Positions 1-64,000 of a stretch of DNA of 64,000 nucleotides are shown here, piece by piece; the stretch's first letter is position 1, and each line of letters opens with the position of its first letter. The stretch is from Thalia democratica. Taxonomy: Eukaryota. Position numbers and translations under genes: made by a program. The stretch covers positions 56,978,001 through 57,042,000 of the forward strand of contig OZ241828.1 in the NCBI GenBank assembly GCA_965202585.1, given 5' to 3'. The notes beneath the pieces are model-generated. The model searched no databases and had not been told where the DNA came from. It saw only the letters and a list, made by a program, of their open reading frames with translations.

Positions 1-2097
1 ATGAAGGTGTACCACAAAATATTCCGCCTCAAAGATGAGAACAACGAAGAAGTGGGAGTGATGCTCATCGACTGCAAAGGGTTCCACGGCCGAGACCTGA
101 CGCTTTCCGACGCGGCAAAAATTTTCACTCTGAGCAGTTTCGTGAGCGGTTTGCAAATCTACAACTTGGAGAAACGAATAAGAGCCGAGGACCTGCACTT
201 TCTCGATCTTGTTTGCACTTGTAGCAAGCTTGTTTCAGATACCAAGCCTTTCAGCGACCTCGGTTTGTTAATAAGAGATTACAACAATGCAAGCGACCTA
301 AACTTCAACGGAGATGTAGAAGGAAGGTTTTATTGGGGATCGTGGCTGAGGCGATCACAAAGCAATGACCTCGGATCAATACAAAATCGTCTTGCCAGTT
401 GTTTTGAGAGTGTAAATTGTTTTTCGTTTCCCAGTCCTGGAAACCTGATAAGTAGTAGGAGAACAAACGATGCCTTTACAGCTCAAGTAGATCAAAGATT
501 TAAAGAAAAAGTTCAAAGTTACGTCGCGAACATTTGCAGAAACTTGAAAGCTAAACAGGTCGATAGACACAGCATAAACTGTTCGCAGTTACTACAACGT
601 TTTCAAGAAAAATTTGATGAGGTAAGCAATCAAAGTATCTTTGATTTAAAACTCTGGAAGCATTCTGTGTCACATGATTACTATGAAGAAAAAGCTTTTA
701 AACTTTACAAGTTGTTTTGCGACCAAATTGGCACTAGTTTAGGTGGTGAACATTCTGATTATGAAGCTTGTAGGCAAGATAAACTACAGCAATTTGACAA
801 TTTAAAGGACTTAGGTTGTATTGAAATAAGAGAAAAGTGCAGAAAAAAGCTAGATGAAGACATGACAATTAAAATTGATGAAACGAAAAAGATTGTGCTT
901 GTTATTGAAAAAGTAAAAAGCACAAAGATAAACTGGAATAATCACCTTAGAAGCTTTTATACTTTTGCTAAACCATTTTTAGTAGTAGTTTTACTTGTTT
1001 TGTCAAATGCTGCGCTTAATACAAGCAGTTTAAAACAAAATGAAAATTTTGAAGTTTCAGAAGTGGAGGTGGTAAACTTTTTCAAAACAACAGTAGAAGA
1101 TTGCTTTGGCATTTACAAAGAAGAGTTAAACTCTAAAAAGTATAAAATTAAAAGTTCTGATCATTTACATGAAGTAGCTTTAAAAGCAATGGACAATGCA
1201 CTGACAAGGTTTAATGATGAGCTTGCTACTTTCAAGACAGATATGAGTATTAACAAAATATCTTTATCTTCAAAAGAATTAGTTAACAGAAACAACACAA
1301 AGTACAAGTCGAAGCTTAAAGAAAAACTTTATAGCTTTTACGTCACTTTGAAAAACCAGTTTGCTGAAGAGTTTGAACTATCAGAAAAAGAAACAAATCT
1401 TATTGAAAACTTTTACAAAGCAAGAGCAAATGAAGTTTTAAGAGTTTACGATGAAAAAATTGCAGATTTTATTCAAAACAAGCCATCAACTGATGAACTA
1501 GTTTCGTTTTTAATAAAATTAAAAGATAGTCTTTTAACAAAATACAAAGATTCAGTACTTGTAGGTAAATTAGCTTCGAACTTTGAATTTAAGCTTCTAA
1601 ACCCAAATGAAAATCAAGTCAAAAATGAATTAAAAAATCAATTATACCAAAGGATGAACGAAAAATACCTAAATGCAAACAATTTAGATGAAAGTTCTCA
1701 CTTTAAATCTAAAACAGAAAACTTCTCAGAAGTTATTGAACACGGGTACTTTTATCCAGTAAAAAACGTTCTGTTTACTCTAGTTATTTACTTGTACTGG
1801 ATTTTTTGTTGTTCAACAAGTGGATGTGTTTTGTATGATTTAATAATTTTAAAGTTTTATAAAGTTAAATATTCAATTAGTATCTTTTTCTTTGCAATAA
1901 CAATCTGTACATCTTTGTATATTATCCAACTATATGTGTACACTTATACCCTTGATGCTTCTCATGTTGTGTTCACAACAACAATTGCTTATGGTACCAA
2001 ATACGGAAATTCTACGTTACATGATTATTTAACGAATTGTTGGGTTTTATACAATGTTATTCGTACATTGGTATACATTTTGCAATTATTAAATTAA
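1..2097 (+). CDS. Atlastin/GBP-family (dynamin-like) GTPase-like membrane protein, copy 1; 5'-truncated by window edge; intronless
   Basis: Open 698-codon frame with atlastin-type motifs LIDCKG (G3 DxxG), KIFTLSSFVSGLQIYNL, EDLHFL, LLIRDY (G4 RD) and SCFESVNCFSFPSPG, followed by helical segments, one internal hydrophobic stretch and several C-terminal hydrophobic stretches. Base 1 matches position 5880 of copy 2, so the true start should lie about 294 nt upstream of the window. Confidence 0.85.
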   Translation: MKVYHKIFRLKDENNEEVGVMLIDCKGFHGRDLTLSDAAKIFTLSSFVSGLQIYNLEKRIRAEDLHFLDLVCTCSKLVSDTKPFSDLGLLIRDYNNASDLNFNGDVEGRFYWGSWLRRSQSNDLGSIQNRLASCFESVNCFSFPSPGNLISSRRTNDAFTAQVDQRFKEKVQSYVANICRNLKAKQVDRHSINCSQLLQRFQEKFDEVSNQSIFDLKLWKHSVSHDYYEEKAFKLYKLFCDQIGTSLGGEHSDYEACRQDKLQQFDNLKDLGCIEIREKCRKKLDEDMTIKIDETKKIVLVIEKVKSTKINWNNHLRSFYTFAKPFLVVVLLVLSNAALNTSSLKQNENFEVSEVEVVNFFKTTVEDCFGIYKEELNSKKYKIKSSDHLHEVALKAMDNALTRFNDELATFKTDMSINKISLSSKELVNRNNTKYKSKLKEKLYSFYVTLKNQFAEEFELSEKETNLIENFYKARANEVLRVYDEKIADFIQNKPSTDELVSFLIKLKDSLLTKYKDSVLVGKLASNFEFKLLNPNENQVKNELKNQLYQRMNEKYLNANNLDESSHFKSKTENFSEVIEHGYFYPVKNVLFTLVIYLYWIFCCSTSGCVLYDLIILKFYKVKYSISIFFFAITICTSLYIIQLYVYTYTLDASHVVFTTTIAYGTKYGNSTLHDYLTNCWVLYNVIRTLVYILQLLN

Positions 2098-5000
2098 ATA
2101 AAAGATTAAATAAACAATTTCAACTTTTTTTCTTTAACATAATCAAAGCTAAGAGAAGTTGAAAACTGCTTGAAAAAAGAAAAATTTTTGAAATACACTG
2201 GCTATAGTTTTATTTTAATAGCAAATTGTTTATAAAATGTTTCATAAAATATTACGGAGACTTATATGTTGTACTTTTTGAAATACTTTTTGACAAGTGT
2301 AATTTATTTTAATTGAACAAAAACATCAGATAAAATATAATAGATAATTTTACTAACTACCAAGCAAGGTGTGAAGTTTACAAAAACAACGTGAAATAAA
2401 ATAATAAACTTTGTGTTCTTGTTTTTGTGGAAGATATTTTTTTCTTTGAACAAAACTTTTAAACAATTCTCAAAAAATATTTTAAAGAAAATATTGGTGT
2501 TATTGAATAAGGATTTAAAAATTTAAGTAAAATAATTAAAACAGCATCTGAATGACATAAAAAATGCATTGTAAAGTTTAAAAGTACTAAAAAGTTTACT
2601 TTTCTTATAAGATCTTTTAATAAACTAAAACTGCTTTAAAACCATTTTATCAAAAAGTTTAATTTGTTTCAAAGTATTTCAAAATGAAAGTCCGTTGATA
2701 TTAAAACGTAAATTTTACAAGCTGTATAAAGTAAGCTAACAATATACTTTTAGCTAGAACAATATTTGTTTTAATATATAAGATTATAAAAATACATAAA
2801 TTTATCTTAACAAAAATCTAATACTTATCATATTATTTCATACTGATAAGAGCCACTGTTATTTTAAAGAACACTTAAAATGAATAACTTCAATGAAGAA
2901 GTATTTTAAAGAATTAAAAACAAAACCAGAACTTTGGAATCAAAACTTACATTTGCTTTATTAAAAAGCTTTTAGTTAAAATGTTATACTGTTTTCAGTT
3001 ATATTTTCAATTGTTTAAATCAAATAAAACAAGTTTTTTCTGTAAACAGCTAAAAAATTTCATGAATCACCCATGATAAGTAGTGTGCATAGAAGCTATT
3101 TAGCTGTGCACAGAAAGTTTATTACGGTAAAGAAATATTACTATTAACGTTTATATTTTCTTTCTGTTAGAAAAAACATATTTATTTTACAAATTAACAG
3201 TTATTTTCACGTTATTTAAAATACTAAAAACATTAGAAAAAATGTGTTTTAAAAGATAAGTTTCGTTTTATTCCAAAGTATAAGGCTTTTAAAAACATTG
3301 AGACACTTTTATCTAGATTAAAGAACGAACTTAAAAAACTAAGCATATTTGACTTTCAGAAATCTGGTATACGCTACTTTAAAAAAAGGCATCGTAAAAT
3401 ACTTTTTTTTTTAATTATATTTATTAGTCATAAATACGCAGCATCTCAAAAAAAAGTCTAACTATAGCTGTTCCTAAAAAAAAATTTTCTTTTCTCCACA
3501 GAACAAAAAAAAATTATCAAACGGTAACTAATTCGTTTTAAAGCTGCCTAAGCTGAATTTTTTTATATTTCCGGACTACACTCGTCTGTACTTTGTAAAA
3601 TTATAACTTAACTCAACTTTTAAACTGCATCATTAATGTTGTAGTCTTCTTTAGAAAAAAAAAAATATATAGGTCATAATAGTCTGACTTGTATAAGAAA
3701 ATGTTTTATTAGCATTTACAGCTTGTTTGTTTTTTGTGTTTCTTCATCCAACAATTCAAATTTTATAGTTATAACAAACCTAATGAAAAACTAATAGTTC
3801 TACTATGAATAGTATATATATAACAAAATAATTATGATACACCATAAAAGATATTCTAAAGTTAATACAGTTACTGTCAAGTAAATTGTTTACATTTAAT
3901 TTTCTACTTAATATTGATGCATAACTTACAACAAAAGTTTTCAGGATTATGCAAAGATGACTGGATACAGCTGTTTTTTTATTGAAAAAGTTTAGACAGT
4001 TTTTAAGTAAAGATTATTTTTGTTTAGCTCTTTTTTGTTACTTAAGTATTTTTTAGAAACAGACAACAGTTTAATATTATTCTAAAATCAGATAAGATTT
4101 TAATTCAACCTGCTACGGACGATTTAAAAAAAAGTACTAAAGTCATTAAAATAATAGTAAGAACTGTTATTAATAAAATTTTGTTCTAGTATTAACTTAA
4201 TTAATTTAAATAAACTAAAACCAAACTACTGAAGTACTATTTTATTTTAAAAAATGTTCCTGGTTGTGAGAATTAGAACTATTGTCAGTTAAAAAAGAAG
4301 CTTGATTAAAAATTTAGTAAAAAGCTGCTCTTAAGCTTTTGAAAAAGTATACTTTTGAGCCTACTGGTTTAAAACTACAATGCTTTGTATCAAATTACTT
4401 TTATCAAATTAAGGATTTTAATTGTCCATTAAATTTAAAAAACCTCGTTGAATTATTTAATTTTAATGTTTTATTTGAACTGAAAAATAAACTTTAGGCG
4501 TTTTGATTATAAACATCGTAAAATTATTTTAGAGTATAATTCTGAAAGTAATTAATACTTTCTAACTTTAACTAGTACTGCTTTTAAAATCGTTGAAAGT
4601 TTTGTTACCTTGTTTATAAAACATTCTATTTTGAAAAGAAACAAAACATTTTTAACAAAAACTTTCTTTTGGAAAACCAAACGAACTTCAAAAACTCAAT
4701 GATTGTAATACTTTTAGTCGAACTACATAACTTTTAATTTTGTTATGCTTCAAAAGTATACAATCAATACTTAAACATTTTATTTTAGACAAGAAAACAG
4801 GTCTTTATGGCGTGCATATGTGCACAGAAATTATTTTATACAAAAATTGTCTTATTTAATTATTTCAAATTTTTATTGTCTATTACGCACAGATGTTTTC
4901 CAGTATTAAATTTTAAATAGATTTTTAAAATATTAAACTACAAATCAAATATTTGTTATTATTGAATTATTATTGAACAAAAAATTAATGTTTGTAATTA

Positions 5001-5585
5001 CATCATTATTTGTTTGCCATTTAGTCTACTAATATTTACGTAAAAAATTAAAACTTTAATTTATTAACTGATTTTATATTGTTATATGAAAGAGTTTTTA
5101 AAAATTATAGAAAACTATAGCTGAAATTTTAAAAATAACTGACAAAAAAATTAAAAAATTTGTCATAAATTTCAATTATTACAAAACCTTCTTTAAAAGA
5201 TATTGTTTTATAATAAGTGATAATTTTTAAGAACAAATGAGATTTGTTTCATATTCAAAATTTATAAACAACGATTACTCCAGTTTATATATAAAAGTTA
5301 AATTTAACATTTTTTGAAAATTTGTAATGTAAAATTAAACTCTATAGGTCTGTGAATCATAAAATTAAATGTTATCTGTCTTAAGAAAGCTTAATGCAAA
5401 AGATGTATATCATTGAATAAATATTTCAGGTGAAATACTGATTTCTATAATAAAAATATATTTTGAGTATGCTGACGAAAACTACCTTTAATTTTACAAT
5501 TTACAGTTTAAGTACTCAAAATGTTAACAAAACCAAAACTTAAAACAAATTCTAGCAATTTGAGTTTAAACTGAATGTGGTAAAC

Positions 5586-8026
5586 ATGGAAAGAACAGCC
5601 ACCGTGGTGGAAAAGGACCCGATCACCAATCACCTTCGCTTCCACCCCGCCAGACTGGAAAACCTCATCCGGGACAATTTCGCAGAAAACCTACTTATAA
5701 TGCCCATATCAATAGCAGGACCATATTCCACTGGGAAGTCGTTTTTCATGAACTTCATGGTGAAGCTGCTGAACGGAACGAACTCTGACGACTGGATCGA
5801 AGCAGAGACCGAGAGTGTGAGATTGAACCTCAACGCGATGACTATCGGAAGTGGGGATTCCCTTAATGTAGGTTGCTGCATGAAGGTGTACCACAAAATA
5901 TTCCGCCTCAAAGATGAGAACAACGAAGAAGTGGGAGTGATGCTCATCGACTGCAAAGGGTTCCACGGCCGAGACCTGACGCTTTCCGACGCGGCAAAAA
6001 TTTTCACTCTGAGCAGTTTCGTGAGCGGTTTGCAAATCTACAACTTGGAGAAACGAATAAGAGCCGAGGACCTGCACTTTCTTGATCTTGTTTGCACTTG
6101 TAGCAAGCTTGTTTCAGATACCAAACCTTTCAGTGACCTCGGTTTGTTAATCAGAGACTACAACAATGCAAGCGACCTAAACTTCAACGGAGATGTAGAA
6201 GGATGGTTTTATTGGGGATCGTGGCTGAGGCGGTCACAAAGCAATGACTTTGGTTCGTTGAAAAATCGTCTTAATAGCTGTTATGAGAATGTAAATTGTT
6301 TTGCGTTGCCCAGTCCTGGAAATCTAGTTAGTATTGGTAGACCCAATGATGTTTCTACATGTCAAATAGATCACAGATTTGAAGAAAATGTTCAAAGTTA
6401 CGTCGCGAACATTTGCAGAAACTTGAAAGCTAAACAGGTTGATGGGCACAGCATAAACTGTTCGCAGTTACTACAAAGTTTTCAAGACAAGTTTGATGAG
6501 GTAAGCAATCAAAGTATCTTTGATTAAAACTCTGGAAGCATTCTGTGTCACATGATTACTATGAAGAAAAAGCTTTTAAACTTTACAAGTTGTTTTGCGA
6601 CCAAATTGGCACTAGTTTAGATAATGAACATTCTGATTATGAAGCTTGTAGACAAGATAAATTACAGCAATTTGACAACTTAAAAGACTTAGGTTGTATT
6701 GAAATAAGAGAAAAGTGCAGAAAAAAGCTAGATGAAGACATGACAACTAAAACTGATGTAACAAAAAAAAAAGCGCTTGATTTTAAAAGAATAAAAAGTA
6801 CCAACAACAACTCGAACAATTACTTAAGAAGCTATTTTACTTCTAATAAAACATTTGTAATAGTAATTTTACTTATTTTATCAAATACTGCGCTTAATAC
6901 AAGCAATTCAAAAGTGAATGAAAATTTTGAAGTTTCAGATGTTGAGGTGGAAACCTTTTTTAAAACAACAGTAGAAGATTGCTTTGGCATTTACAAAGAA
7001 GAGTTAAACTCTAGAAAATATAAAATTATAAGTTCTGATCATTTACATGAAGTAGCTTTAAAAGCAATGGAAAATGCACTGACAAGGTTTAATGATGATG
7101 TTACTACTTTCAAGACAGATATAAAAATTAACAAAGTTTCTTTATCTTCAAAAGAACTAGTTTACAGTAACAACACAAAGTACAAGTCAAAGCTTAAAGA
7201 AAAACTTTATAGCTTTTACGTTACTTTAAAACATCAGTTTACTGAAGAGTTTGAAAGATTAGAGAAAGAAACAAATATTATTAAAAACTTTTACAGAGCA
7301 AAAGCAAAGGAAGTTTTAAGAACTTACGATGAAAAAATAGCAGATTTTATTCAATACAAGCCATCAAATGATGAACTAGTTTCGTTTTCAAAAAAATTAA
7401 AAGACACACTTTTAACTAAATACGAAGATACAGAATTCGTAGATATAGTATCTTCGATTTTTAAGTTTAAACTTTTAAAACCAAATGAAAATCGAGTGAA
7501 AAACGAAATATTTAATCAGTTATATCAAAGAACGAACGAAAACAACTTAAATGCAAACAATGAAGAAGAAAGTTCTCACTTTAAATCTACAATAGAAAAC
7601 TTCTCAAAAATTATTGAACAAGGGTACTTTTATACAGTGATAAACGGTCTGTTAACTCTAGTTAACTACTTGTACTGGAGTTGTTGTTCAGTAGTAAGCA
7701 TACATTTTTTTCGTTATCTATTCTCCGAAAGCTTCAAAATTAAATTTTCATTCAAGAACTTTTTCTTAGCATTAACAATATGTACATCTTTGTATATTAT
7801 GCAACTATATGTTTACTCTTATACCCTTGATGCTGCTCATGTTGTGTTTATGCCTGCAACAATTGCTTTTAATCTAAAATACATTGTTGGGTTTATGTTT
7901 GCAACACTTGCGGGTAAAATAAAAACTGTGATGTTTGAAATTACGGTGTTTTGTTATTTGATGATATTTTGGGCTCTGTACAGTGTTGTTCGTACACTTA
8001 CCTACTTTTTGCAGTTAATGTTTTAA
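5586..8026 (+). pseudogene. Atlastin-like GTPase copy 2, interrupted by one 1-nt deletion at about 6524 (pseudogene, split gene or homopolymer error)
   Basis: ATG at 5586; P-loop ISIAGPYSTGKSFFMN. Colinear with copy 1, whose TTTGATTTAAAACTC reads TTTGATTAAAACTC here, giving TAA at 6525-6527. The downstream frame 6545-8026 resumes the copy-1 protein. No other lesion seen. Confidence 0.75.
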
Positions 8027-8767
8027 GTTAAAGATTAGAAATACTTTTTTAAACTAAATTATTAACTTTTTTATTATATCGAATTAAAAAAGAAGTTAAA
8101 AACTGTTTGAAAAACGTAAAAGTTAAAAAAATGCTGATTATAATTTTGAGTTGTAGTAGCCAAATGTTTGTAAAGTGTTATATTAAAATATTTCAGATAC
8201 TTTTTTATACGCATATTTTTGACAATTGTTCATTCATTAATTTTTAATAAAACAACAAAAGAACTTACAATTCATAATTCTACTTACTACAAAGCAATAT
8301 TTTCCAAAGTTAAAAAATAACTCAAAATAAAAAATTTCAAATGAATGTTCCTGTTTTTGCAGAGGCTATTATTTTGCTCAAAAATACTTTCAAACTGTTC
8401 AAAAAAAATATTTTTCAGATAAAAACTTAGTTGTATTTTTGTACTAAAAAACTATTAAAACTTGATAAGTTAGGTGAAAAAATAAAATGATATTTATATA
8501 AAAAAGAAAATACTTTATAAAGTTTTTTTTTATCATCTGTTTTTAGACAATTTTAAAAAGTAATTTTTAAATGTATGTATGTCCTAAAAGTTTTAGAACA
8601 ACCAAACAAACATGTTTGTTTAAGGTTTAAATCGTTAGAAAGATATACAAAACATCTATATACAAGCTTTAACAAAACAATTCACAGCTAATATATTTAA
8701 AATTACCAATACTGCGTATATCTAATACAGATTTTGACTAATTAGATTTAAACTAAATGTAGTAAAC

Positions 8768-11221
8768 ATGGAAAGAACAGTCACCGTGGTGTGGAAAAGG
8801 ACCCGATCACCAACCACCTTCGCTTCCACCCCGCTAGACTGGTAAACCTTACCCGGGACAATTTCGCCGAAAACCTACTTATAATGCCCATATCAATAGC
8901 AGGACCATATTCCACTGGAAAGTCGTTTTTCATGAACTTCATGGTGAACCTGCTGAACGGAACGAACTCTGACGACTGGATCGAAGCAGAGAGCGAAAGT
9001 GTGAGTTTGAACCTCGACGCGATGACTATCGGAAGTGGGGATTTCCCTAATGTAGGATGCTGCATGAAGGTGTACCACAAAATATTCCGCCTCAAAGATG
9101 AGAACAACGAAGAAGTGGGAGTGATGCTCATCGACTGCAAAGGGTTCCACGGCCGAGACCTGAAAATTTTCACTCTGAGCAGTTTCGTGAGCGGTTTGCA
9201 AATCTACAACTTGGAGAAACGAATAAGAGCCGAGGACCTGCACTTTCTCGATCTTGTTTGCACTTGTAGTAAGCTTGTTTCAGATACCAAGCCTTTCAGC
9301 GACCTCGGTTTGTTAATCAGAGATTACAACAATGCAAGCGACCTAAACTTCAACGGAGATGTAGAAGGAAGGTTTTATTTGGGATCGTGGCTGAGGCGAT
9401 CACAAAGCAATGACTTTGGTTTGTTGAAAAATCGTCTTGCCAGTTGTTATGAGAGCGTAAATTGTTTTGCGTTGCCCAGTCCTGGAAACCTGATGAGTAG
9501 TAAGAGAACAAACGATGCTTTACAGCTCAAGTAGATCAAAGATTTAAAGAAAATGTTCAACATTACGTCGCGAACATTTGCAGAAACTTGAAAGCTAAAC
9601 AGGTCGATGGACACAGCATAAACTGTTCGCAGTTACTACAACGTTTTCATGACACATTTGACGAAATAAAAAGTTAAAGTATATTTGATTTAAAACTTTG
9701 GAAGCATTCAGTGTCACGTGACTACTATGGAGAAAATTCTACAAGACCTTACAAGTTGTTTTGCGACCAAACTAGAACGAGTTTAGATAATGAACATTCT
9801 GATTATGAAGCTTGTAGACAAAAAAAATTACAGCAATATGACAATTTAAAGGACTTAGGTTGTAATGAAATGGGAGTAAAGTGCAGAAAAAAGCTAGATG
9901 AAAGCATAAAAAACAAAGTTGATAAAACAAAAAAAAAACTTATTTTTGAAAGGGTGAAAAGAACAAATAAAAACTCGAACAATTACCTAAAAAACTTATC
10001 TACTTCTTTTAAAGCATTTGTAGTAGTAATTTTACTTGTTCTATCAAATACTGCACTTAATACAAAAAATTCTAAAGTAAATGATATTATCGAAATTTCA
10101 GAATTTGAATTTGAAAGCTTTTTTAAAACAACAGTAGAAAATTGTTTTGTTATTTATAAAGAAGAGCTAAGCTCTAAGATGTATAAAACTAAAAAGTCTG
10201 ATCATTTAAATGAAGTAGCTTTAAAAGCAATGGACAATGCACTGACAAAGTTTAATAAGGAGGTTACTACTTTCAAGACTGAAATGAATATTAACAAAAT
10301 GTGTTTATTTTTAAAAGAATTAGTTAACAAAAACAACACAAAGTACAAGTTGAAGCTTAAAGAAAAACTTTATAGCTTTTAAGTCACTTTGAAAAATCAG
10401 TTTGCTGAAGAGTTCGAAAGATCAAAAGAAACGAATCTTATTGAAAAGTTTTATAAAGCAAGAGCAAATGAAGTTTTAAGAGTTTACGATGAAATAATTG
10501 CATATTTTGTTCAATACAAGCCATCAAATGATGAACTAGTTTCATTTTCGAAACAATTAAAAGACAGTCTTTTAATTAAATACGAAGATTCAGTATTTTT
10601 AGATAAAATATCTTCAAATTTTAAATTTAAACTTTTAAAACCAAATGAAAACCAAGTGAAAAACAAAATATTTAATCAGTTATATCAAAGAACGAACGAA
10701 AACAACTTAGATGCAAACAATGAAGAAGAAAGTTCTCACTTTAAATCTACAATAGAAAACTTCTCAAAAATTATTGAACAAGGGTACTTTTATACAGTGA
10801 TAAACGGTCTGTTAACTCTAGTTATTTCCTTATACTGGATTTTTTTTTTTTTCTAATTAGCGGATGTTTTTTACATGAACTAACCTTTGAAAAATTTAAA
10901 ATTAAACTTCGTATTAAGAAATTTTTATTACCAATAACAACATGTACATCTTTGTATATTATCCAACTATATGTGTACTCTTACACCCTTGATGCTGCTC
11001 ATGTTGTGTTTATACCAGCATTTATTGGTTGTAATCAAAAATTCATGGTTACGTTACAGATTTTAACATTTCCTCCTAAATTAAAATTGATAACTTTAAA
11101 ATTTAGGGCGTTTGATCATTTACTTATAATTTGGGCTTTGTATAGTGTTATTCGTGCATTTACCTGCTTTTTGCAGCTAATATTTTATATACTATATACT
11201 TTAGTGATATACTTCATTTGA
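8768..11221 (+). pseudogene. Atlastin-like GTPase copy 3, multiply disrupted pseudogene
   Basis: ATG at 8768, then a 2-nt GT insertion at about 8790, an 18-nt in-frame deletion (TLSDAA) near 9160, a 1-nt deletion near 9517, in-frame TAA at 9675-9677 and 10380-10382, and a frameshift in the T-run near 10850. Confidence 0.88.
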
Positions 11222-59433: not shown

Positions 59434-60472
59434 CTGGTTTAAAAGTAGCTTTAGAAAGTCATTGCAGAAAATAGTGTTGGAAAATTTTCCTTAACAGTGG
59501 CTAAAAGAGGCATAAAGTTTAGTAAAGTTTCAAGTAGCCATCAAGAAACTTACGAGGCTGCATGTTATATATTTTAAAGTTTTTTTTTTTAGTCTTAATT
59601 GCTTTAAGTGTAACAAAAGTTTCAAGACGTTTTATAGAACTGCACTAAAAGATATCAAACTGAATTATTTACATCTTAAAAAGTCAGTTGAACTTACTTA
59701 CAACGATAATTTTCTCAAAACTATGTACAAGGCTTTTTTGTTTCAAAAAGTAATTTTTTAATTATAAATGCAATTGTAAAAGTGTTTTTGCTTCCCACAC
59801 ACAAAAAGTTTAGAGGAAATCTTACTTGATTGTACTTGCGAGGCACTCATTAATATGCCTACTATTTTAGTTTCCTACTTTAAACTGCTTTTCAGCTCAT
59901 TACGAAAACTTTACTTATGTTAGTATTGTAAACTTTATACCAAAGCTTTTTAATTTAAAATTAGATTAAATTAGGTAACTAATCTAAAGTAACAAATATA
60001 CATTAAAACTTATTCTAAATACAAATACTAAAGTAAACTTATGTAGAGGTTTTTTTCAACAATGGTCAACATAGATTAGTTGATTAAATTAGTTGTTTGA
60101 CTTAAAACTTTTTTACTGACTAAAAACTTTATGTTAAACTTTGTTATAGCTTTACACATTTCTTTACTTATTTTAATAATCACGTACAACACAAATGTTG
60201 TTTCAGAAGATAAAAAGAAAGTTTTCTAGGAAAATGCTACCATATTTCAAACACATAAATCCTACACACCTAGAAATTTTTAAAGCAAAATAAATTACTG
60301 AGGTTAAAAAATAATAATTAACCATTGAATGACTCGTTAGAAACAGTGTTTAAGTATTTATATTAACTAAACATCTTAAAACTAATACAGACATAAGTAA
60401 ATTGCTCTTATGAATTCGGAAACAATAACATGTTATTTTTTACAAAGCTTTTTACCAATAAAACCAACTAAC

Positions 60473-63400
60473 CAGCTGGCGACGGTGGCGGCCGTTGCGG
60501 TCACCTGGTTCTGATTGGTCGCTTCCATCCTCGCCATCATCTTCCCCCTCATCGGCTTCACCTTCTCCTTCCTCGCCCGGCTCTGCGCGCACGGCATGCA
60601 CTCGATCTTCTCCTCGTACTTCTTCGCTTTCACCCCTTTGGCGAACGCGGCAAAGTGGCTCCGGTCCCACGTCCTCCCAATCTCCTCGTAGTCGACCCAC
60701 ATTGCGCCGGACGTCTCTTCCAGCACTTTCGGCTTGGCGGCGCCCTTGAACTCGAACACGGGCTGCCACACGACAACCGAGTTGTTGTTGGCGGGAAAAA
60801 TTTTGTAGTTGACGATTTCGTTGCAGTAGAGCTGCTTGAGCATGCCGTGCAGCTTGGCGCTCATCCTGACCACCCCTTCTTTCGCCGCCTCGCACTTCCC
60901 CTTGCCCCCTCCAACCGCCCTCCTGCGCTTCCCCCTCCCCTCCTTCGTGATGTAGAAGAAGTCCTTGCAGCACGGGCACCTGTGGCAGTGGCACAGCAGT
61001 TCCCTCAGCTGCTCCTGGTGGACGCCCTGCTTTATTTTTGCGACTATCTCCAGGTCTGTGGGTTTGTTAGAGGGACCAGAGAAAGATTTGGCTTCATTGG
61101 GAATGGACGGAGGGCACATGTTGTCCATCAGGCTGACGATTGTCTTCGGGCGAACGATGTGGTCTTCTATCCCCGTTTTGGTCTGCAGCGAAGCGACCAG
61201 CTTTTCCAAGTTCGTGTCCCCGCTTTCCAACGCCTTTTTAACTTCCATTTCCAGCTGGCTTTCGGTCATTCCGACCTGTTTGTTTTTGGCCAGCACGCCC
61301 AAGACCTCCTTGTACTGCTTCAAAGTTTCCGAAACCTGACTCGCGTTTTGATCGGACTTGTTTTTGTCAGCAATCTGTTTGCAGTTTGAGTTGTTATTTG
61401 GTGAATGGCTGACTGGTTTTTTTGTTGGGCCTTGTTTTTCAACTTTGTTGTCACTGCTAAGTTTTGCTTTTTGTTGGTCAATGTTAGAAAGTTGGCTCGA
61501 GACTGTAACATTTTGAGCTTTTACCTGAGTGATGAATTTGTTTTCTGTAGGTTTGGTCTGGTCTTTGGTTTGGTTTGTACTAGTTTTAGCCTGAAGTTCG
61601 TTAACTTCTTTTTTAAAAGGTATCGTTTCTTTTTGCTCAACAGGGTCAGAACTGCTGCTTCTTATATTTGCTGCTTCCTCTACTATTGAAAGACAATTGC
61701 ATTCATTTTCCGTGTTTTTCTTTGAGTCTGTAGCTTCAACTTCTTTGTTAGAGCTTTGCGAACCAGCTTGTTTTGACTTCCCACGTTTCTTTTTATTTTT
61801 GCGTTTTTTGCGCGACGGACTTTTGATAGAAACCTCTTCTTCATTTTTGTCTTCTTTTTTAACCACCTGCTCTTTTGGTTTGTCATTAGTTGAGATGTTA
61901 TTGCTTGTCGGTTTCTCGATTGAAATAACTTCTTGGGTGTTTGTATCCTCCTTGTATTGCTTCAGAGTTTCCGAAACCTGACTCGTGTTTTGGTTTTGTA
62001 CATTTAGGTTGGAACTGTTTTTGTTGGCAATTTGTTTGAAGTTTGAACTTTTTGTCGGTGAATGGTTGACTTGTTTTTTAGTTGGTTCTTGTTTTTCAAT
62101 TTTTTTGTCACTGCCTAGTTTTGCTTCTTGCTGGTCAATGCTAGAAGGTGGGCTTGAACATGTTACACTTTTAGTTTTTATCGGCGCTTTGGATTTGCAC
62201 TCTGTAGGTTTGGTTTGGTCTTTGGTTTGTTCTGTGATAGTTTTACACTGAAGTTTGTTTAATTCTTTTTTTGAGGATATTGTTTCTTTTTGCGTAGAAG
62301 GGTTTGAATAGTTATTTGTAATTTTTGCTGCTTCCTCTAGTATTGAAAGACAATTGCATTTATTTTCCGTGTTTTTCTTTGAGTCTGTAGCTTCAACTTC
62401 TTTGTTAGAGCTTTTCGAACCAGCTTGTTTTGACTTCCCACGTTTCTTTTTGTTTTTGCGTTTTTTGCGCGACGGACTTTGGATAGAAACCTTTTTTTCA
62501 TTTACTTCTTCTTTTTTGACCACACGCTGTTTTGGTTTATCATTATTTGAGCTGTTATTGCTTTCTAGTGTCTCTTTTAAAATTATTTCCTTGTCAGTTG
62601 TTTTAAGTAAAGTTTTTTGTAGCTCTTTTATGCATTCATCCCTAATTTCTTTTTTACTGAGACTTTCAGCATTCAGCCGTTTAATCTCTTTTCTACACTG
62701 CTGCCTAAATTCATCCAAAACTTGTTTTATGTTGCTTGACTCTTTAATTTCAACAGAATTGTTAGTTTTTACAATGTCTTTGTTTTGCTTCATTTCAAGT
62801 TGACGTAACGCTTTTGGAACAGAAATGTTTAGATCTACTTTAAAGTCATTTGGTTTTGGTTTTTCTGTAAGCTTTTGAATTGCTTTAGTTACTGTGTTAT
62901 CGAGTTTTTCAACAGCTAATTTGTTTTCGTTTTTAATGCTAGTATGTTGTCTTTCTTTGACAAGTGTTTGTTCATTACCTTTTTTTGTGATAGTTGTTAG
63001 TTTAAACTCATCTTTTTTAATTATATTTTTGTTAAACACTTTTAGTTTTTGAACCGAATTTATTTGATTTTTGACAAAAGTGTTATCTTTTTTTATGTTT
63101 AACTTGTCTGCTTCTTGCAATTTTTCAGAGGTTGAACTAGTAGGTATTTTAGGTGTTTTTGTTTTTAAATTATTTTCTCTATTTTCAGATTTAGTTTCAG
63201 CGTGGTTTTTATGATTTATAGTTGTAGATGTTAGAGTGTTTTGGTTATCTTTAGTTTTAATCGAATTAAAGTTGTCTTTTTTACTGTTATTAAAACTATT
63301 TTTAGATGAGTAGCTTGTACTGCTTTCATTCGAAACAATTGGCAAGTTTAAATTAGCTTGGTCAGTTTTACAATTTGTAGTTCCGTTTTCTTTGTCGATC

Positions 63401-64000
63401 AAATCAAGACTATTGAAACCTGTAGTTACTAAAGGGGTCATTTGTTTCTTAACATTAATAGCTTTTTTATCTTTTATACTAGTTTCAATTTTTTTAGGAG
63501 AGTGCTCACTCTGTATTTTAGGTAAAACGGCATAAGTTTTAGTTTTTACTTTTGAAGTAGTAACATTTTTTGTATCATTTAGTATTGGTAGTGGTTCTTG
63601 ACTTCGTTTCTGTATCTTAAAAGGTTTTGGTTTAAAAAAAGTTTTAAGTTTGTTGCCTTTTTGTTTCTTAACATTTGCGGCTGTTTTTTCTTGAAGTGTA
63701 TGTGTATTGCTATAGTTTTTATCATTTATTTTATTAAAGTTTGATGAACACGAGTTTTTATTACTTTTAATTACTGATGCAAAGGAAGGTAGATGGGTGT
63801 TTTCAACATAGCTACAACTTATTTCTGATGGAAAGTGTCTACAATTAGAACTATCAAGACCAGCTATTTTAGTTTTTGGTTTAACTGTATGTATATTACT
63901 ATTTGAATTGTTATTTATAGAAGAAGATTGACTAACTTTTTTATTTTGCTGGTCATTAGAAAATTTTTTACATTTTTTAGGCGTTTTTGTTATGTTGCTT
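60473..64000 (-). CDS. Giant (>3.5 kb) exon of an uncharacterised protein: Lys/Asn/Ser/Thr-rich low-complexity region, internal duplication, C-terminal candidate degenerate Nudix fold; 5' end beyond the window
   Basis: I translated 63442-64000 by hand and found no in-frame stop, so the frame is open to the window edge. A GTTAGT donor at 60472 coincides with the drop in GC content and is phase-compatible with exon 59433-59163. If unspliced, the frame stops at 60433. Confidence 0.8.
61305..62560 (-). repeat. In-frame tandem duplication, offset 657 bp (219 codons)
   Basis: SPSRKKRKNKKKRGKSKQAGS...QTKDQTKPTE...SQVSETLKQYKE occurs twice; anchor GCGCGACGG at 61810 and 62467. Confidence 0.92.

Follow-up and report, generated by a model that had tools for sequence, protein, structure and literature searches.

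We analysed a 64,000-nt stretch of the genome of the salp Thalia democratica (contig OZ241828.1, C4:56978001-57042000), hereafter called the window. Its first 11.2 kb contain three copies of a tandem gene array derived from atlastin, a protein of the GBP/atlastin branch of the dynamin superfamily that is usually a conserved, low-copy fusogen of the endoplasmic reticulum. On balance, we favour the view that these genes belong to a lineage-restricted, atlastin-derived clade whose G domain would bind nucleotide with little or no hydrolysis, and that the array itself is in birth-and-death turnover. We found no description in the literature of an atlastin radiation, of an arginine-less atlastin clade or of an atlastin expansion in tunicates.

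A six-frame search of the genome (an 802-Mb AT-rich assembly) revealed five intronless copies, named A, B, 1, 2 and 3, of which the three in the window are on the same strand. The original prediction, made from the window, of three tandem, intronless, atlastin-like copies was thus borne out, and the array extends upstream to five. The copies are located as follows.

C4:56964967, upstream of the window: copy A, broken, with the P-loop GPYSTWKS.
C4:56974523, upstream of the window: copy B, with the P-loop GQYSTGKS.
1-2097, plus strand: copy 1, codons 92-789 and the stop codon; its 5' end is cut by the window edge, the ATG being 296 nt further upstream.
5586-8026, plus strand: copy 2, from ATG to stop, with the frame broken inside.
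8768 to about 11200, plus strand: copy 3, a clear pseudogene; its 3' end is approximate.

The motifs of the G domain were then read from each copy in the window and, for copy 1, from the sequence upstream.

Upstream of the window: copy 1 P-loop, GQYSTGKS, with a switch I reading PNVGCY.
5718-5741, plus strand: copy 2 P-loop, GPYSTGKS, with Ser at the position of atlastin-1 R77.
8902-8925, plus strand: copy 3 P-loop, GPYSTGKS.
5865-5879, plus strand: copy 2 switch I, NVGCC.
9049-9063, plus strand: copy 3 switch I, NVGCC.
70-81 (copy 1), 5949-5960 (copy 2) and 9133-9144 (copy 3), plus strand: G3 motif, DCKG, in which DxxG is kept.
268-282 (copy 1), 6147-6161 (copy 2) and 9313-9327 (copy 3), plus strand: G4 motif, LIRDY, in which RD is kept.

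The P-loop arginine finger (GxxRxGKS) is absent from all five copies, which read GQYSTGKS, GPYSTGKS or GPYSTWKS. The P-loop GPYSTGKS predicted for copies 2 and 3, as well as the retention of GKS, DxxG and RD, was found in place. The P-loop of copy 1, which lay outside the original view, was recovered upstream; Arg is absent from it and from every other member of the clade described below, and the original proposal is thus not refuted by a copy 1 with Arg and Thr. For switch I, originally read as (L/P)NVG, the loss of the catalytic Thr stood but the alignment was one residue off. Indeed, in the HMMER alignment to atlastin-1, NVGCC lies opposite RETTG, so that the switch-I Thr is replaced by Gly and not by Asn. 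No Thr or Ser occupies this position under either alignment. The loss of catalytic residues in the array is solid.

The relationship of the array to known GTPases was assayed by sequence and by fold. In a Pfam scan, PF02263 (the GBP/atlastin G domain) was matched by copy 2 with an expectation value (E) of 2e-22, by copy 3 with 2e-16 and by part of copy 1 with 1.5e-14. No other family reached the cut-off in the window copies; thus no RING finger was found, and PF02841 (GBP_C) was not matched. The search with GBP and RHD3 profiles that had been proposed for these copies gave PF02263 and no match to PF05879 (the RHD3-type G domain) at E <=0.1. A PF02841 scan of the salp's own genome also gave no match, but its positive control likewise matched nowhere. 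The closest solved relatives are atlastin-1 and atlastin-3: HMMER against the PDB gave atlastin-1 at E 1e-31 and no GBP at E <=0.01. For copy 1, an AlphaFold2 (AF2) model is confident over the G domain and the helical bundle next to it, and weaker further on. This first three-helix bundle directly follows the G domain (residues 300-400, predicted local distance difference test score, pLDDT, 77-97). In Foldseek, the top match was atlastin-1 (E 1e-22 over some 420 columns), with atlastin-3, RNF112 and the GBPs next in order. The alignment spans approximately 400-426 columns of atlastin-1 1-446, and the G domain alone gave a template-modelling score of 0.83 against atlastin-1. Sequence and fold therefore agree that the array proteins derive from atlastin and not from GBP, a solid conclusion in which the placement relative to GBP, Sey1 and RNF112 is by E-value and fold ranking rather than by a tree with those outgroups.

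Beyond the first bundle, the architecture departs from that of atlastin. Hydropathy analysis displayed a short hydrophobic segment at about 407-435, approximately 250 helical residues and then 3-7 transmembrane helices, and the atlastin-type hairpin (two close transmembrane helices followed by a short amphipathic tail) is absent from the array copies. The array proteins are accordingly predicted to be located in a membrane. When modelled alone (pLDDT 81), the helical insert formed a pair of three-helix bundles with a long helix connecting them. Foldseek found nothing in the PDB for this insert at E <=0.001, and VIA-align gave Z scores of 8.4-10.4 against the bundles of atlastin-1, RNF112, Sey1p and GBP1. 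A specific kinship with these bundles was rejected, since ribosome-recycling factor and designed bundles score equally, which indicates a common arrangement only. Sequence comparison gave no support for an internal repeat either: in hhalign, the first bundle reached a probability of at most 2% against the second helical region, whether taken whole or in thirds. Language-model features of the C-terminal half gave Sey1_3HB and GBP_C at 0.84-0.88, which is below the trust level, so that Sey1_3HB (0.88) is a lead only.

An exhaustive phmmer search of 1.84 billion representatives returned 929 matches. The close ones are fragments and full-length proteins that all come from ENA or JGI metagenomes (P0002 at 86% identity, P0018, P0007, P0022 and others), and the next tier, at 26-31% identity, consists of ordinary atlastin-like proteins of ticks, flatworms and nematodes. 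Among the best 150 of the 929 matches, 135 P-loops have Arg at the finger position; another residue is present there only in members of the arginine-less clade and in P0021, which corresponds to the salp locus L011 (see below). A further relative is P0001, an intact protein of 801 amino acids at 54% identity, encoded on an ocean metagenome contig from another species. In a tree of 70 G domains (quick search, unrooted), the array, P0002, P0001 and the salp locus L027 form one clade with 100% support and a stem of 1.0 substitutions per site. Inside this clade G..TGK[ST] and DC.G are invariant, whereas the finger position drifts (S, C, D, G, K).

The C-terminal module of the clade was found at only six loci in the genome, the array copies and L027. 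L027 lies on another chromosome (C5:61764006-61767023, minus strand) and encodes 1006 amino acids, intact from ATG to stop; it is the sole clade member of the assembly with such a complete frame. Its P-loop is GPSKTGKS, its switch-I Thr is absent and TG stands instead of RD. It also carries an extra insert of about 110 amino acids and approximately seven C-terminal transmembrane helices. In P0001 and P0018, the switch-I Thr is retained. On this unrooted tree, the arginine was likely lost first and the threonine later.

Selection was estimated from the ratio of nonsynonymous to synonymous substitution rates (dN/dS), using the method of Nei and Gojobori (NG86) within the array. There, the ratio is 0.22-0.50 in the G domain and 0.45-0.87 in the rest of the protein. 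Against the intact relative P0001, it is approximately 0.08 in the G domain, with dS saturated, and 0.45 in the rest, which shows that strong constraint has acted on the G domain even without its arginine finger. The private G-domain changes of copy B comprise eight synonymous and four nonsynonymous substitutions. Outside the C-terminal tail, which is decaying, sliding windows gave no dN/dS value clearly above 1; in the tail the ratio is near 1, and decay and alignment noise interfere there. Motifs, AF2 model and dN/dS values together indicate that catalytic residues have been lost and that the G fold has been kept under selection, as would be expected of a pseudo-GTPase. This label, which has known precedent, would be a reasonable though putative one for the array proteins.

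The five copies were aligned as DNA and their lesions were scored relative to each other. In the reference haplotype, each of the five carries at least one frame-disrupting lesion.

Copy A: an 8-bp insertion, 10-bp and 1-bp deletions, stop codons, and Gly to Trp in the P-loop.
Copy B: a single 1-bp deletion near codon 725.
Copy 1: a 2-bp insertion after codon 8, which puts the ATG out of frame.
Copy 2: a 1-bp deletion at about 6523, leading to a premature TAA at 6525-6527; the remainder is in the next frame (open reading frame 6545-8026).
Copy 3, 5' part: a 2-bp insertion at 8789-8790, an 18-bp deletion after 9162 and a 1-bp deletion at about 9520.
Copy 3, 3' part: in-frame TAA at 9675 and at 10380, and a 2-bp insertion at 10852-10853.

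The array had been described as partly pseudogenised, which was correct as to the presence of lesions but understated, since all five copies are affected. Copies B and 1 are nearly intact. Copy B retains an ATG-initiated frame of 724 codons, without the last transmembrane helices, and in copy 1 the 789 codons following the insertion are open up to the normal stop. The 2-bp insertion of copy 1 is common to copy 3 and is therefore no assembly slip. In this assembly, the array is disabled, largely or wholly, despite its transcription and the recent constraint on it.

The layout of the array carries further marks of turnover. The spacing between genes is 3202 nt from B to 1 and 3211 nt from 2 to 3; one upstream sequence is common to copies B and 2, and another to copies 1 and 3. 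This matched spacing, together with the paired upstream sequences, points to the duplication of a two-gene unit. In the approximately 100 nt before the ATG, copies 1 and 3 are alike and differ from a stretch common to A, B and 2, showing that the members of the duplicated unit have different 5' flanks. Pairwise identity among the copies is mosaic along the gene. A tract of 186-204 nt is identical in B, 1 and 2, against about 12% divergence overall; it covers alignment columns 295-498 (window positions 5880-6080, approximately, in copy 2), from the end of switch I through G3, and copy A shares 93-122 nt of it. This tract probably results from gene conversion, constraint at the nucleotide level being also possible, and conversion may account for the recent frameshift within the otherwise open copy 1. 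Lesions, a duplicated two-gene unit and conversion tracts are thus all present, in agreement with the birth-and-death character originally proposed for the locus.

In run X3, which is labelled as a different organism, the same locus was recovered at >95% identity. A joint in this run skips 476 nt inside copy B (positions 1173-1650 of the stretch L026), and the spacer displays several 1-bp differences. These differences are due either to structural variation of the array or to a very close sister species.

Transcription was assayed by mapping public runs on a 6-kb stretch containing copies B and 1. In two marine metatranscriptome runs, contigs were confined to the coding parts of B and 1, with no depth at all in the 800-nt spacer or after the copy 1 stop. 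The whole stretch was covered in two DNA runs. Coverage of coding parts only, with the spacer seen in the DNA runs, indicates RNA rather than contaminating DNA. With lengths of only 65-185 nt and 95-100% identity, the RNA contigs establish no more than transcription of the family in wild populations. Contigs of two DNA runs carry an extra G that would restore the frame at the deletion site of copy B. At this site, copy 2 differs from B by two letters and that G only, so that cross-mapping from copy 2 is possible.

The genome-wide count proposed originally gave, besides the five array copies, a wider family: the assembly contains approximately 20 intronless PF02263 loci, most of which keep both the arginine and the threonine, and the PF02263 scan of the genome revealed no other type of G domain. 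Three loci are canonical. L012, L015 and L009 group in the tree with the atlastins of other animals and display the P-loop GAFR[KT]GKS, DTQG, RD and an atlastin-like transmembrane hairpin, placed by hydropathy at about 435-480 in L012 and L015. Their switch I reads D/ET-T/K-G in L012 and L015 and RVTTG in L009. The remaining PF02263 paralogs form lineage-specific clades without transmembrane segments. Two of these, L011 (C5:38346722) and L013 (C2:55307082), are soluble proteins of about 790 amino acids with the CaaX-like ends CIIQ and CVIQ. L013 has GPFRTGKS, RETTG, DTQG and RD, whereas its sister L011 has GVYSTGKS and RN instead of RD; L011 has lost the arginine finger independently of L013. 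A soluble paralog matched atlastin-1 at E 2e-63 and GBPs at 1e-8; being far closer to atlastin-1, it indicates that the radiation stems from atlastin.

Elsewhere in the window, a 1002-codon open frame lies on the minus strand at 60433-63441, in the only GC-richer (0.43) and strongly AT-skewed stretch of the window.

These results may be combined as follows. Of atlastin, the clade retains the G domain and the three-helix bundle that follows it. Every clade member has lost the arginine finger, and the array and L027 have lost the switch-I threonine as well. The transmembrane hairpin and tail have been replaced by a short hydrophobic segment, two more three-helix bundles and a tail of 3-7 predicted transmembrane helices. 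It has been reported that the P-loop arginine (R48 in GBP1, R77 in atlastin-1) stabilises the transition state, that R77A affects hydrolysis only and that mutation of R48 stops hydrolysis but not dimerisation (PMC5084822); a crystal structure of atlastin-1 R77A with GDP is also available (PDB 6b9d). Since GK[ST], DxxG and, mostly, RD are constrained while the finger drifts and the threonine is lost, nucleotide would be held in the G domain and hydrolysed poorly or not at all. With turnover slow or absent, the hydrolysis-driven cycle of tethering and fusion could not run, and the G domain would serve as a structural or regulatory module and not as the motor of the atlastin fusion cycle. The locus itself turns over by duplication of a unit, by probable conversion homogenising tracts and by lesions in each copy.

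Several points weigh against this explanation. Sey1p and RHD3 hydrolyse GTP with a Ser at the finger position, and dynamin is also an active GTPase with Ser there, dynamin-type catalysis using a cation (PMC5084822). P0001 keeps the switch-I Thr, and some clade members may thus still hydrolyse GTP. L027 is without RD, so that nucleotide binding may have been lost in part of the clade. The RNA contigs are not assignable to one copy or to intact alleles. Finally, none of the five array copies has a complete ATG-to-stop frame in the assembly, and the array itself may for that reason be non-functional in it.

This last point leads to a different explanation, which we consider rather unlikely but of real weight: the array would be dead DNA, a recently inactivated cluster, and any role of the clade would be left to the intact L027. 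The frame-disrupting lesions in all five copies, the Gly to Trp change in the P-loop of copy A, the reality of the insertion common to copies 1 and 3 and the C-terminal dN/dS near 1 all agree with it. However, copy 1 holds 789 open codons while its partner copy 3 has gained about five further lesions, and copy B has its ATG and 724-codon frame with private G-domain changes at 4:8 nonsynonymous to synonymous. The within-array G-domain dN/dS of 0.22-0.50, the restriction of RNA contigs to coding parts and the extra G seen in two other runs at the copy B deletion site, even if possibly cross-mapped from copy 2, also speak against dead DNA. The proteins might instead be working GTPases in which a cation has taken over the catalytic part of the arginine finger, in the manner of dynamin, Sey1p and RHD3; this we find improbable. 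In favour of such a switch, the Ser of the array stands at the exact position of the Ser of Sey1p and RHD3 (PMC5084822), YSTGKS arose independently in L011, GKS, DxxG and RD are conserved, and P0001 and P0018 retain the switch-I Thr. Against such a switch, the finger position varies within the clade and both the array and L027 are also without the switch-I Thr; moreover, human and mouse RNF112, which has no finger and degenerate G2 and G3 motifs, is only weakly active and was not rescued by restoration of the Arg (PMC12012479).

A GBP-like, cell-autonomous defence family under birth and death, which is where the resemblance to immune families would lead, seems to us no more probable than a switch of catalysis. 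It is in keeping with the tandem expansion, pseudogenes and gene conversion at the locus, with the fast-evolving C-terminal half, and with the presence of about 20 atlastin paralogs in a genome whose PF02263 scan gave no other G-domain type. A review has also floated the idea that invertebrate atlastins take over GBP roles, BmAtlastin-n being antiviral (PMC9005921). On the other hand, no dN/dS window is clearly above 1 outside decaying tails, the array is small, and the GBP_C scan of the genome is uninformative, its control having matched nowhere.

IRGM ('GMS') proteins, which have an altered P-loop and are sited at membranes, regulate catalytically normal soluble paralogs in an expanded, fast-turnover GTPase family. 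By analogy, the atlastin radiation might have given rise to a GBP-like system in salps, with the soluble paralogs as effectors and the arginine-less clade as membrane regulators or decoys; we hold this to be very improbable. The effectors would then be the partly prenylated, catalytically normal paralogs, in animals that display no canonical GBP, and the arginine-less clade would guard self membranes as the 'GMS' proteins do. Regulators or decoys of this kind would account for two features at once: a catalytically degenerate G domain that is nonetheless under strong constraint, and an array that turns over rapidly.

Whichever role applies, intronless atlastin paralogs number about 20 in a single animal lineage, against the usual low copy number. 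One of its clades kept the G fold under strong selection, dropped the catalytic Arg and Thr and gained a new membrane architecture. If the explanation we favour is correct, this clade would be a natural experiment on an atlastin G domain without hydrolysis, and a second independent case beside mammalian RNF112. Gene birth, conversion and death can be followed together at one locus, and the family bears on whether invertebrate atlastins took GBP-like roles (PMC9005921).

Compared with known systems, the array shares with atlastin-1, atlastin-3 and Drosophila atlastin the G domain, the three-helix bundle, the GKS, DxxG and RD motifs and a membrane anchor, which in the array is predicted. Unlike them, it is without the arginine finger, the switch-I Thr and the close transmembrane hairpin with its short tail; it adds helical bundles of about 250 amino acids and 3-7 transmembrane helices, and it is multi-copy and decaying where atlastin is a single conserved gene. 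It differs from the GBPs, which are soluble and often carry a CaaX end, in giving no PF02841 match, in the predicted membrane anchoring of the clade and in the rank of GBPs well below atlastins. The IRGM regulators, for their part, belong to a different GTPase family from this clade. Sey1p and RHD3 resemble the array in the Ser of their P-loop (PMC5084822) and in a stalk of several three-helix bundles followed by transmembrane segments; however, PF05879 gave no match, the G domain goes with atlastin by sequence and fold, and the switch-I Thr is lost in the array. RNF112/neurolastin (PDB 9jju-9jjx) is likewise an atlastin relative in which the finger is not conserved, the arginine having been lost naturally in human and mouse RNF112 (PMC12012479), and it is the second-best fold family. 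The array, in which no RING finger was found, is distinguished from RNF112 by its other C-terminal architecture, its tunicate-restricted clade and its tandem arrangement.

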